64,000 nt of DNA, from the sequence record MT135025.1; one strand, 5' to 3'. The position numbers and the translations under genes were made by a program. The notes beneath the pieces are model-generated. The model ran no database searches and had not been told where the DNA came from. It worked only from the letters and a program-made list of their open reading frames with translations. Below are positions 37,276-43,195 of this stretch, one piece after another. Numbering within the stretch: position 1 is the first letter of the stretch; each line of letters starts with the position of its first letter.

Positions 37276-37350
37276 TGGTGGACACGCAGGGAGTCGAACC
37301 CTATCTTCCTCATTGCAAGTGAGGCGCTTTCCCAATTAAGCTAACGGCCC
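37276..37350 (-). tRNA. tRNA-Ala(UGC)
   Basis: Cloverleaf, CCA. Confidence 0.9.
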
Positions 37351-40740: not shown

Positions 40741-40856
40741 TGGTAGTCGGGGCTGGATTCGAACCAGCGACCACGTGCTTAACAGGCAATTGAAGGAGTG
40801 CTGGAGCGATACTTGTCAGTATCATTCTTCGTGCTCTACCACTGAGCTACCCGACT
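40741..40856 (-). ncRNA. tRNA-Asn(GUU) body with a 41-nt insert in the anticodon stem (C2)
   Basis: Removing the insert gives CGUGC-CUGUUAA-GCACG; insert has GAUACU-GACA-AGUAUC + CAGCAC. Confidence 0.8.
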
Positions 40857-40861
40857 ATGAA

Positions 40862-41383
40862 TTATTTAACTTTGAACTTCAAATTACGCCAGTCAAAGTT
40901 TCGTTTGTTCTTTGTGCTATAGAACGTGCCCCAATCAATAGCAATAGGACAGTTCTTACTCCCCACACGAGCGATAAAGACATCGTGAGTCTCGCTGTAA
41001 CGCTCTCTAAGCTCTTTTACGCGCTTATCGTAGTTAGCGATATACTCTGCACAAGCTTTGTTGTAATCAGCTTTAGAGAAGCGTTCATTGCTTGCAAAGA
41101 CACGCCCGAGGTACGGTCGAATAACACGCACTCGCTCTTTAGACCAGCCCATACTGAAGCTGTTTTCAATCTCGCCAGTGATTTTACCAGTCTTCTTACA
41201 TCTAGCAAGAATAACCCAACAACGCTCACGTCGAAAATCTTTTCGTACGTACACGTTAACGTGCTTGTCAATGTACTCTTGGTAACGAGCGTTATACTCA
41301 GCACGCAGTTTATTGCGTACTTCAGGAGACATTGCAGCGCGTTCTTCTTTCGAAAACGCTTGTGCGAATTTCAATGGTTTCAT
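40862..41383 (-). CDS. Hypothetical basic protein
   Basis: GAGGA RBS before MKPLKF. Confidence 0.8.
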   Translation of the reverse strand: MKPLKFAQAFSKEERAAMSPEVRNKLRAEYNARYQEYIDKHVNVYVRKDFRRERCWVILARCKKTGKITGEIENSFSMGWSKERVRVIRPYLGRVFASNERFSKADYNKACAEYIANYDKRVKELRERYSETHDVFIARVGSKNCPIAIDWGTFYSTKNKRNFDWRNLKFKVK

Positions 41384-41396
41384 TATAATTTCCTCT

Positions 41397-41636
41397 TGGC
41401 GCCGCTCGTGTGAATCGAACACACGTCAAACACAACACCTCGTCCACCCGATTAGAGTTTCGAAGTAAGAGCTAATCAGCATTTCGGAGCAGTCGAGCGT
41501 TATTTCTACGAGTGAGCTTTCGACAACTCACACGCACTTTCTACTCGGTCCCAGTGATTCGGTACCAACACAGGTTGCGAACCTATGTCTGCACTAATGT
41601 TGGGAAAACACTGCGTATTGTACACCAGTTAGCGGC
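41397..41636 (-). ncRNA. 240-nt tmRNA-shaped RNA with tRNA-like ends
   Basis: GCCGCU/AGCGGC acceptor, GUGUG-UUCGAUU-CACAC T arm, G-CCA end; ~190-nt multi-hairpin interior. Confidence 0.7.
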
Positions 41637-41643
41637 ATTTTAT

Positions 41644-41874
41644 TTAAAGATAGCTGTCAAATACATCATCATCAACTTCTTCAATATTGATGTCAGCGTA
41701 ACATTCATTCGCAATTGCTTGAATTTCATCTATTGAAACTGTACCTGAGTACAAAACAACAGCGTCATCCGGAATCACAACATCACACATGTATTTGTTA
41801 AACATTGCAGTTCTGAAATCAGAATCAACAGAGTAACCGTGCATTGATGTGATAACTAGCAATTTATGTGACAT
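41644..41874 (-). CDS. Hypothetical protein
   Basis: TTGACA-N17-TAGTAT promoter, GAGGA RBS. Confidence 0.75.
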   Translation of the reverse strand: MSHKLLVITSMHGYSVDSDFRTAMFNKYMCDVVIPDDAVVLYSGTVSIDEIQAIANECYADINIEEVDDDVFDSYL

Positions 41875-41951
41875 AATGTTTTCCTCGTGTAGTTGATAAT
41901 GTGTATACTACACGTTGATGAAACGCCTGTCAACAACTTTTTCAATTTTTT

Positions 41952-42409: not shown

Positions 42410-42533
42410 TGGTGGAGAGTGATGGATTTGAACCACCGACCAAAAGATTTACCTAGTTATTAAGGTTTGCAGCATGAATGCTTGTCAGTATTCTTTAACA
42501 TTCTTTTGCTCTACCAGACTGAGCTAACTCTCC
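42410..42533 (-). ncRNA. tRNA-body chimera C3 (anticodon loop replaced by motif domain, CCA present)
   Basis: AAAGA/UCUUU stem encloses GAAU-ACUGACAAGC-AUUC + AUG CUGCAA. Confidence 0.75.
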
Positions 42534-42543
42534 AGAATTTGAG

Positions 42544-42654
42544 GGTGAAGTACAGGACTCGAACCTGCGACCTCCGGCGTGCAATACATGCAGCATGAAA
42601 TCTTAACAGATTTCTTTTTAGGCCGGCATTCTAACCAACTGAACTAACTTCACC
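42544..42654 (-). ncRNA. tRNA-Asp-like body chimera C4
   Basis: CCGGC/GCCGG stem encloses GAAAUCU-GUUA-AGAUUUC + AUG CUGCAU. Confidence 0.75.
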
Positions 42655-42664
42655 AATGTAAAAA

Positions 42665-42802
42665 CATATAGTTGCGGGTGTAGGATTCGAACCTACATCA
42701 CGATCTTATGAATGATATGCGAAATTGGTTGCCGTACAGATTCTTATCAGAATCAGTTTTGTGCTACGTGTGCTACCACTTACACCAACCCGCAACTATA
42801 TG
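42665..42802 (-). ncRNA. tRNA-body chimera C5 (CAU loop retained, extended acceptor stem)
   Basis: Insert GAUUCU-GAUA-AGAAUC + UGUA CGGCAA; ~15-bp terminal helix, no CCA. Confidence 0.75.
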
Positions 42803-43048: not shown

Positions 43049-43195
43049 GAGAGTACATTGGTCGAGTGTAACGGAATCGAACCGTTCCCACGATCTCCCT
43101 ATGATATGCGTAAATTGGTTGCTGAATATAATCATGTCTGATTACAGTATGCTACGTGTGCTGCCACTACACCAACACTCGACCAATATACTCTC
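43049..43195 (-). ncRNA. tRNA-body chimera C6 (paralogue of C5, extended acceptor stem)
   Basis: Insert UAAUC..GAUUA + UUCAGCAACCAAUUU; ~20-bp terminal helix. Confidence 0.75.

Follow-up and report, generated by a model that had tools for sequence, protein, structure and literature searches.

Some phage genomes carry genes for transfer-messenger RNA (tmRNA). In tmRNA (SsrA; RF00023, RF01849-RF01851, RF02544) the two ends of the molecule provide an acceptor stem and, stacked with it, a canonical T arm, the D arm is replaced by a stem-less loop with a conserved GG, and a long helix, P2, leaves this tRNA-like domain at the place of the anticodon stem and carries the rest of the molecule. The same arrangement of ends was found in a 240-nt element at 41397-41636 on the minus strand of a 64-kb window of sequence record MT135025.1 (Vibrio phage V07), the window being the whole stretch of DNA analysed here. 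Positions in the RNA are counted from its 5' end, with RNA position 1 at 41636, so that a window coordinate equals 41637 minus the RNA position. Unlike tmRNA, the element has no G3:U70 pair, fixed discriminator, conserved CCA, resume codon, tag frame or stop. Whereas tmRNA contains the pseudoknot PK1, a messenger region and PK2-4, the interior of the 240-nt element is predicted to be a nested four-way junction and is unseen by the tmRNA models of ARAGORN and Rfam.

In genomic context the nearest relatives in kind are RNA C (species 1, rnaC) and RNA D of phage T4, which are stable RNAs of still unknown function (PMC3014915, PMC9697503). Like them, the element lies within the tRNA cluster downstream of gene 57B, is co-oriented with the tRNAs and is not itself a tRNA. 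T4 RNA C has a terminal stem, a canonical T arm (CCGGG-UUCGAAU-CCCGG) and an N-ACA end resembling the N-ACA tail of the D482, F86 and 1.081.O versions of the element. In contrast to the element, however, it is 139 nt long and has two hairpins placed as in a cloverleaf with no long-range P2, while RNA D is without a T arm. When covariance model R1, built from the Vibrio alignment described below, was run on the T4 locus, it gave 13.4 bits over the tRNA-like end of rnaC, which was no better than true tRNAs. The element is thus nearest in shape to the tRNA-like domain of tmRNA and nearest in genomic context to T4 RNA C, and it is a member of neither family, since defining features of tmRNA are absent and its likeness to T4 RNA C, in sequence as in topology, is limited to the tRNA-like end.

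Other RNAs combine a tRNA-like part with a foreign body. In engineered 'tRNA scaffold' RNAs a foreign structured RNA is placed on the anticodon-stem position and processed by the tRNA enzymes of the cell to give a stable product, and the mascRNA of MALAT1 is a natural tRNA-like processing signal. A complete tRNA with its D arm is retained in the engineered scaffolds, whereas the element has no D stem and is natural and conserved. YrlA (RF02553, bacterial Y RNA-like) is likewise a non-coding RNA with a tRNA-mimicking module, and it works bound to protein; its ends, however, form a long Ro-binding stem with the tRNA-like part inside, while the ends of the element are the acceptor stem itself. 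The Rfam model of YrlA gave no match on the element, and its sole match in the window (30 bits, gathering score 69) lay over two adjacent tRNA genes at 42475-42596.

The minus strand of the element reads 5' GCCGCU...GUGUG-UUCGAUU-CACAC-G-AGCGGC-G-CCA 3', and the element fills the gap between two open reading frames (ORFs). It starts 7 nt past the stop of the ORF at 41644-41874 (-), and its 3' end abuts the ribosome-binding site (RBS) of the ORF at 40862-41383 (-), the first base of that site, AGAGGAA, following directly on CCA. The surrounding locus is a T4-type tRNA cluster downstream of gene 57B in a KVP40-like Vibrio phage, and the window contains 28 tRNA genes called by ARAGORN and 31 Rfam tRNA matches, all on the minus strand. 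A search pattern made of the P2 3' strand, the T arm and the acceptor stem hit a single place in the 64 kb (in two overlapping registers), compared with 0.01 expected by chance.

Over the 240 nt, identity was 100% in V07, 99.6% in phi-pp2 and 97.9% in KVP40. Homologues were found in 49 records, all of them KVP40-type Vibrio phages (Schizotequatrovirus, Mylasvirus), and no natural deletion of the RNA from an otherwise intact relative was seen among these records. In the same 49 records the region was unannotated or covered by spurious ORF calls, small ORFs having been placed over the RNA on either strand in several. In D482-type phages DNA similarity was confined to positions 82-340 of a 421-nt query, which correspond to the RNA (85-324) plus the RBS and exclude the flanking ORFs. 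Patterns built on the conserved motifs returned only KVP40 and VH7D in IMG/VR, plus five chance matches that were rejected by the profile, and gave 0 matches in the JGI metagenomes and 0 in GTDB genomes. A literature search, which did not take in the KVP40 genome paper, found no paper linking KVP40 to a tmRNA or a tRNA-like RNA. As far as can be seen, the element represents an undescribed family of structured RNA confined to vibriophages of the KVP40 type; enterobacterial T4-like phages may contain an analogue.

The fold was examined on an alignment of ten sequences, namely the window (V07) and KVP40, ValKK3, D482, F86, QD01, nt-1, 1.081.O, VS1 and CZ01. Since the minimum free energy of the single sequence was only mildly better than that of shuffled sequences (z = -2.6), the case rests on the comparison between phages. 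With RNAalifold the acceptor stem, a long-range helix, the T arm and two arms in the interior were recovered, each supported by compensatory changes. The 8-bp helix P6 and the extension of P2 to 12 pairs came from an exhaustive search for covarying runs that are paired throughout. The 3' interior proposed by the first RNAalifold run, three small hairpins with zero covariation, was replaced by P6, and an alternative D hairpin (GUGU/ACGC) was rejected because it is broken in the ValKK3 clade, which keeps P2. In the final model of 70 pairs, 94.3% of the pair cells of the ten homologues were standard pairs, versus 37-46% when the partners were slid by 1-3 columns. Changes on both sides were seen in 36 of the 70 pairs, and 0 of 500 shuffles reached any of the five measures. 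Covarying pairs were present in each of the acceptor stem, P2, P3, P4/P5, P6 and the T arm.

The tRNA-like part of this model consists of the following features, all on the minus strand. The acceptor stem P1 (RNA 1-6/231-236) pairs GCCGCU at 41631..41636 with AGCGGC at 41401..41406; it is a stem of 6-7 bp in which 100% of the cells are paired and 4 of 6 pairs have changed on both sides. It is followed by a 10-nt analogue of the D loop without a D stem, AACUGGUGUA (41621..41630), which is unpaired in the consensus fold and holds an invariant GG (G11, G12). The connecting helix P2 is formed by RNA 17-29 (41608..41620), with U20 bulged, and RNA 199-210 (41427..41438), which ends 2 nt short of the T arm; its 12 pairs are 100% paired and 3 have changed on both sides. 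The T arm GUGUG-UUCGAUU-CACAC (RNA 213-229; 41408..41424) carries the canonical G53, U54, U55, C56, A58 and C61, and 4 of its 5 stem pairs have changed on both sides, while the loop GUUCGA.UC is invariant across the alignment. In V07 the discriminator G and the encoded CCA occupy 41397..41400.

P2 carries an interior of about 170 nt with three arms, also on the minus strand. Arm P3 (RNA 33-87; 41550..41604) is a long irregular hairpin with the invariant internal loops CAUUAG and GAAUCAC, and 11 of the 19 pairs of its two helices (helices 3 and 4) have changed on both sides. Arm P4/P5 (RNA 90-143; 41494..41547) has a 4-bp base helix, the A-rich joints AGAAA and GAAAUAA, and the hairpin P5, whose loop GUCGAA (41519-41524) is invariant in the alignment; here both sides have changed in 12 of 15 pairs (helices 5 and 6). 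Arm P6 (RNA 158-189; 41448..41479) is an 8-bp helix of CUGAUUAG and CUAAUCGG closed by an invariant 16-nt loop, CUCUUACUUCGAAACU. The P6 helix is 100% paired in 10 of 10 sequences, with two pairs changed on both sides and two on one side. The 9-nt joint between P6 and P2, GUGGACGAG (41439..41447), is conserved and single-stranded. By alignment this body is the best-conserved part of the element. The P5 and P6 loops could form a kissing contact of five pairs (UCGAA with UUCGA), which is no more than a proposal, as neither side ever varies.

The location of the element among tRNA genes, some of whose neighbours carry inserts of 38-54 nt and are annotated as pseudogenes in KVP40, raises the question of whether it is a functionless, decayed tRNA gene interrupted by a selfish element or an intron. 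Such an origin is very unlikely. Strong covariation in every arm and several invariant loops are maintained across phages whose flanking DNA cannot be aligned, and the ends joined without the body could not form a tRNA, as they provide neither a D arm nor an anticodon loop. The tRNA cloverleaf (RF00005), with its D arm and 7-nt anticodon loop, was recognised in the element by neither ARAGORN nor Rfam, and a possible D hairpin is broken in the ValKK3 clade. The interior of about 170 nt is too short for a group I intron, and neither group I nor group II introns of Rfam matched the element.

An earlier, sequence-only reading of this stretch had described a tmRNA-shaped RNA of 240 nt lacking alanine identity. 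The ends GCCGCU/AGCGGC, the T arm and the encoded G-CCA are present as it wrote them and their stems covary, and the covariation across ten phages together with an RNA-library contig (see below) agrees with a discrete, structured element whose interior is conserved. Its interior hairpins fared unevenly: AGGU-UCGCA-ACCU and GUGAG/CUCAC are real and covarying, whereas CAACA/UGUUG is not kept in relatives and GGUACC..GGGACC showed no pairing, the bases of these two being paired otherwise in the conserved fold.

The absence of alanine identity, also noted from the sequence, holds throughout the family. The pair at 3:70 is C3:G70 with discriminator G in this phage, and the corresponding alignment columns (3:241) are C:G in 10 of 10 sequences, while the discriminator is G, A or C. 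The further suggestion of a different amino-acid identity was not supported by the comparison; the variable discriminator and the encoding of CCA in some clades only speak against a fixed amino-acid identity of any kind.

Ribosome rescue in the manner of tmRNA, with non-alanine charging and an encoded tag, would be in keeping with the tRNA-like domain, which is of the tmRNA type in its covarying acceptor stem, P2 and T arm, its D-stem-less invariant GG loop and its invariant T loop. It would also suit the encoded CCA and the open frame of 28 codons, GCA GAC...UAG, both of which occur in the V07, KVP40 and ValKK3 clades. This frame does exist in V07, as had been claimed, but it is not conserved. 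It is open in V07, KVP40 and ValKK3, ends at RNA position 56-57 in 1.081.O and F86 (after 4-5 codons), at 96 in D482 and at 107 in VS1, and indels of 1, 2 and 3 nt, hence not all multiples of three, fall inside its region. No conserved stop or resume context was seen across the alignment, so the likeness of its start to a tmRNA resume site was not upheld. ARAGORN called neither a tmRNA nor a tRNA at the element. Rfam found no tmRNA, tRNA or intron there, whether at gathering scores or, for stretches of 3.1 kb and 266 nt, at E<=10; the best permissive match was a partial one of 8 bits (gathering score 84), in which the 3' half aligned with the tRNA-like part of beta_tmRNA. The consensus fold contained no pseudoknots of the PK1-PK4 type, only the single possible loop-loop contact, and no messenger part was found. 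Rescue with a tag is accordingly a highly improbable function. On the evidence of the aligned sequences the element is not a tmRNA, and the earlier reading is upheld in part, namely for a discrete, structured RNA, its tRNA-like domain and the lack of alanine identity.

One other frame (..FETLIG..CC..) was open in all ten sequences; neither its start nor its stop is conserved, and in five phages it ran through the T arm. Its 'silent' changes are compensatory partners in helix P6, which explains the coding-like pattern of the most conserved stretch. A small protein encoded in the conserved 3' interior (MLISSYFETLIGWTRCCV in V07) could likewise be imagined from an ATG-initiated frame of 18 codons, in which half of the variable positions are third codon positions. 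However, no RBS precedes this start. D482 has GUG in its place, and in F86, where 1 nt is inserted, a stop intervenes and the start is lost. There is no conservation of the frame's own stop either, and the variable third positions pair with covarying P6 partners. We regard such a protein as next to excluded. The tag and the small protein are both rejected because the frames lack conserved stops and P6 accounts for the 'silent' changes.

The ends of the element look like the processing sites of the neighbouring tRNAs. The U at -1 is invariant in all ten phages, as is the whole run A-U-G(+1) to which it belongs, and among the 31 tRNA genes of this phage U-1 is found in 22 and an encoded CCA in 29. 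In the element CCA is encoded by the KVP40 and ValKK3 clades, all others having N-ACA or C-ACG, and for this reason the tRNA-like 3' end may not be general. No terminator-like site was found beside the RNA or between it and the upstream promoter-like site. The latter, TTGACA-17-TAGTAT at 41905..41933 (-), is a consensus match 5' of the 76-aa ORF (phrog_18680; 41644..41874, -), which precedes the RNA and which only the KVP40 and ValKK3 clades possess. For the RNA to exist separately, it would accordingly need to be excised from a longer transcript. No RNA-seq run of cells infected with a KVP40-type phage came to light in the searches made. In two RNA libraries of one seawater sample, a contig of 229 nt was obtained in each that lay wholly on 41398-41626, while both flanking ORFs had zero depth. 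The contig differs from the window at 18 positions and so comes from a relative; as weak evidence, it agrees with a stable species of about this size.

Downstream of the RNA lies an ORF for a strongly basic protein of 173 aa (phrog_15953; 40862..41383, -), which adjoins the RNA in every Vibrio clade; its RBS, AGAGGAA, is at 41390..41396 (-). The protein family has a pI of 9.3-10.2 and about 23% K+R. In KVP40 the gene (KVP40.0317) is annotated from an upstream GTG (40862-41422, -), so that the coding sequence covers the last 26 nt of the RNA. The ATG at 41383, with its good RBS, is the likelier start. A colicin D assignment (Pfam, E=0.039, below the cut-off) was dropped after fold comparison.

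The position of the RNA raises the possibility that it acts in cis, as a leader or punctuation element whose tRNA-like end frees the mRNA just before the RBS and whose body tunes the translation or stability of that mRNA. The RBS begins at the base after the CCA position in all Vibrio clades, with similar spacing in two more distant sequences, the divergent contig L019 and Cronobacter phage LPCS28, and the RNA and the protein gene are always adjacent. Yet the contig from the RNA libraries stops at the CCA and has zero depth on the ORF, and in nt-1, CZ01 and D482 the RNA and the 173-aa gene are separated by an additional small ORF. A covarying and partly invariant structure of about 170 nt would also be needless for a mere processing site. 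We consider a purely cis-acting role decidedly unlikely.

More distant homologues of the protein gene were also inspected. In L019, model R1 gave a full-length match of 255 nt (L019:601-855) directly upstream of the protein homologue, scoring 22.8 bits versus 13-18 for plain tRNAs. A 5' partner for its acceptor stem had been sought by brute-force pairing, which was too noisy, and was later placed by the covariance model. Cronobacter phages S13 and LPCS28 and Citrobacter phage Ci1 carry an unannotated element of 269 nt directly upstream of the homologous protein gene (L025:1489-1757 in LPCS28, identical in S13; L026:901-1168 in Ci1, 81.5% identity). Its acceptor stem is of 6 bp and is accompanied by a GGUG loop, a T arm and G-CCA, or G-CCG in Ci1; in LPCS28 the element sits after three expanded tRNA-like genes. 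This enterobacterial element is a possible analogue of the Vibrio RNA, from which it differs in its interior. Because the adjacency recurs across genera, a functional link between RNA and protein is suggested, either as a shared complex or as coupled expression.

Taken together, we think the element is probably a trans-acting, stable, structured non-coding RNA of KVP40-type phages that binds protein and is matured by the tRNA pathway. It would consist of two modules. The first is a tRNA-like handle, in which the acceptor stem would stack on the T arm and the GG loop would join it to form a tRNA elbow. The elbow-forming GG and T loop of tRNAs are used by RNase P and the CCA-adding enzyme. The tRNA machinery of the host may cut the RNA out by means of this handle, with RNase P cleaving at G+1 after the invariant U-1 and with 3' trimming that stops at CCA or close to it; protection of the RNA ends would be a further effect of the handle. 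As the RNA lies in a polycistronic tRNA-cluster transcript and has no terminator of its own, excision is most likely what the handle serves. The second module is the four-way-junction body of about 170 nt, set on the 12-bp helix at the place of the anticodon stem of a tRNA. With its three arms, its invariant loops and the possible loop-loop contact, it would be the functional part and most likely binds protein. The best candidate for its partner is the basic 173-aa protein, the 5' end of whose mRNA would be created by the same cut; we propose this partner from adjacency and charge, and with much less confidence than the class of the RNA.

Several observations weigh against this interpretation. 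CCA is unencoded outside two clades, yet true tRNAs in those phages do encode it (12 of 13 in L023, a D482-like metagenomic phage). The RNA-library support is one assembled contig of low depth (word depth 3.6-4.5) from one sample, in which DNA carry-over is possible, and its 18 differences from the window count here as well. The interior of the enterobacterial element fails to align with the Vibrio family, and a still more distant homologue of the protein (L020) has no such RNA upstream. For the protein, an AlphaFold model (pLDDT 83) found no fold match in PDB or the AFDB clusters and only sub-threshold matches in the ESM Atlas.

The handle could also be the active part, if the RNA served to titrate or redirect, in the infected cell, a host factor recognising the elbow of acceptor and T arm (SmpB, EF-Tu, RelA, the CCA-adding enzyme or tRNA-directed defence nucleases). 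In such a role as decoy or sponge it might be joined by the other expanded tRNA-like genes of the cluster. In favour of this, the anatomy of the tRNA-like domain is that of tmRNA, with a D-stem-less GG loop and a long P2, the sole echo in Rfam is the 8-bit match to the tRNA-like part of beta-tmRNA, and five further genes of the cluster with a replaced or expanded anticodon region would suit undecodable binders of tRNA enzymes. However, no evidence identified a target. A decoy needs the handle alone, yet the body is the best-conserved part, and the variable discriminator and 3' tail are unexpected for a mimic of a charged or CCA-ended tRNA. We judge this role unlikely.

An extension of the protein-binding reading may be put forward as speculation, tentative and rather doubtful though it is. 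On this view a tRNA mimic would be the core of a phage ribonucleoprotein of a kind not seen before, in which the element would supply the RNA and would work with the basic protein and five expanded tRNA-shaped genes; the module would occur in Cronobacter and Citrobacter T4-like phages as well. Its target would be the tRNA-directed machinery of the host, with two possible modes of action: as a decoy for tRNA-cleaving defence enzymes or translation factors, or in the processing of phage tRNAs that bear inserts.

The cluster contains further tRNA-shaped genes that were noted alongside the element. Two paralogous genes at 43058-43186 and 42671-42797 (-) escaped detection by ARAGORN and, at gathering scores, by Rfam. 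In each, a terminal stem of 10-12 bp is combined with D and T arms and some 55 additional nt, and a 12-bp terminal stem exceeds the acceptor stem of any tRNA. The pair shares GCAACCAAUUU(A)CGCAUAUCAU..GAUCGUG, and one of the two has a hairpin GAUUC-UGAUAA-GAAUC.

Three tRNA genes at 42544-42653, 42413-42533 and 40744-40856 (-), annotated as 'tRNA-Pseudo' in KVP40, have 38-54 extra nt in the anticodon loop. Common to the inserts is a hairpin of 5 bp whose 6-nt loop is UGACAA or UGUUAA. This hairpin is also found in orthologous insert-bearing tRNA genes of LPCS28 (L025:1063-1310) and in contig L019, and for this reason the inserts are regarded as old and conserved rather than a product of decay. 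The gene at 42544-42653 (-) resembles tRNA-Asp with G34 and U35 replaced by 38 nt, and it is the only tRNA gene here without CCA encoded near its 3' end (CUC). A contig from the RNA libraries matches both of its halves, with GU at the joint (loop CUGUCAC); since the rest of this contig is unlike the window, it is probably the tRNA-Asp of another organism. A further tRNA gene at 37279-37350 (-), whose acceptor stem starts GGGCCGU, was found by Rfam with 44.9 bits and was absent from the ARAGORN list.

Upstream of the cluster, the 57B homologue of L023 (L023:624-1079) matches Pfam Acb1 (PF23474), a family of anti-CBASS phosphodiesterases, and the T4 RefSeq and PG216 records label 57B 'RNA ligase'. 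Record MT135025.1 (V07) is 349,331 bp long compared with about 244-250 kb in close relatives, which could mean that duplicated or foreign sequence was taken into the assembly.

Although KVP40 has served as a reference T4-like phage since 2003, the region of this RNA was left unannotated or overlaid with spurious ORF calls. The RNA would give the tRNA-like domain of tmRNA a second natural architecture, with the same handle and a wholly different body, which suggests that the handle is reusable as a module for maturation and stability. RNA C and RNA D of T4 would gain a better-conserved and more structured relative in kind, making the role of cluster RNAs more open to experiment. Finally, the RNA, the insert-bearing tRNA-like genes and the co-conserved basic protein together point to an unexplored layer of phage manipulation of tRNA biology.

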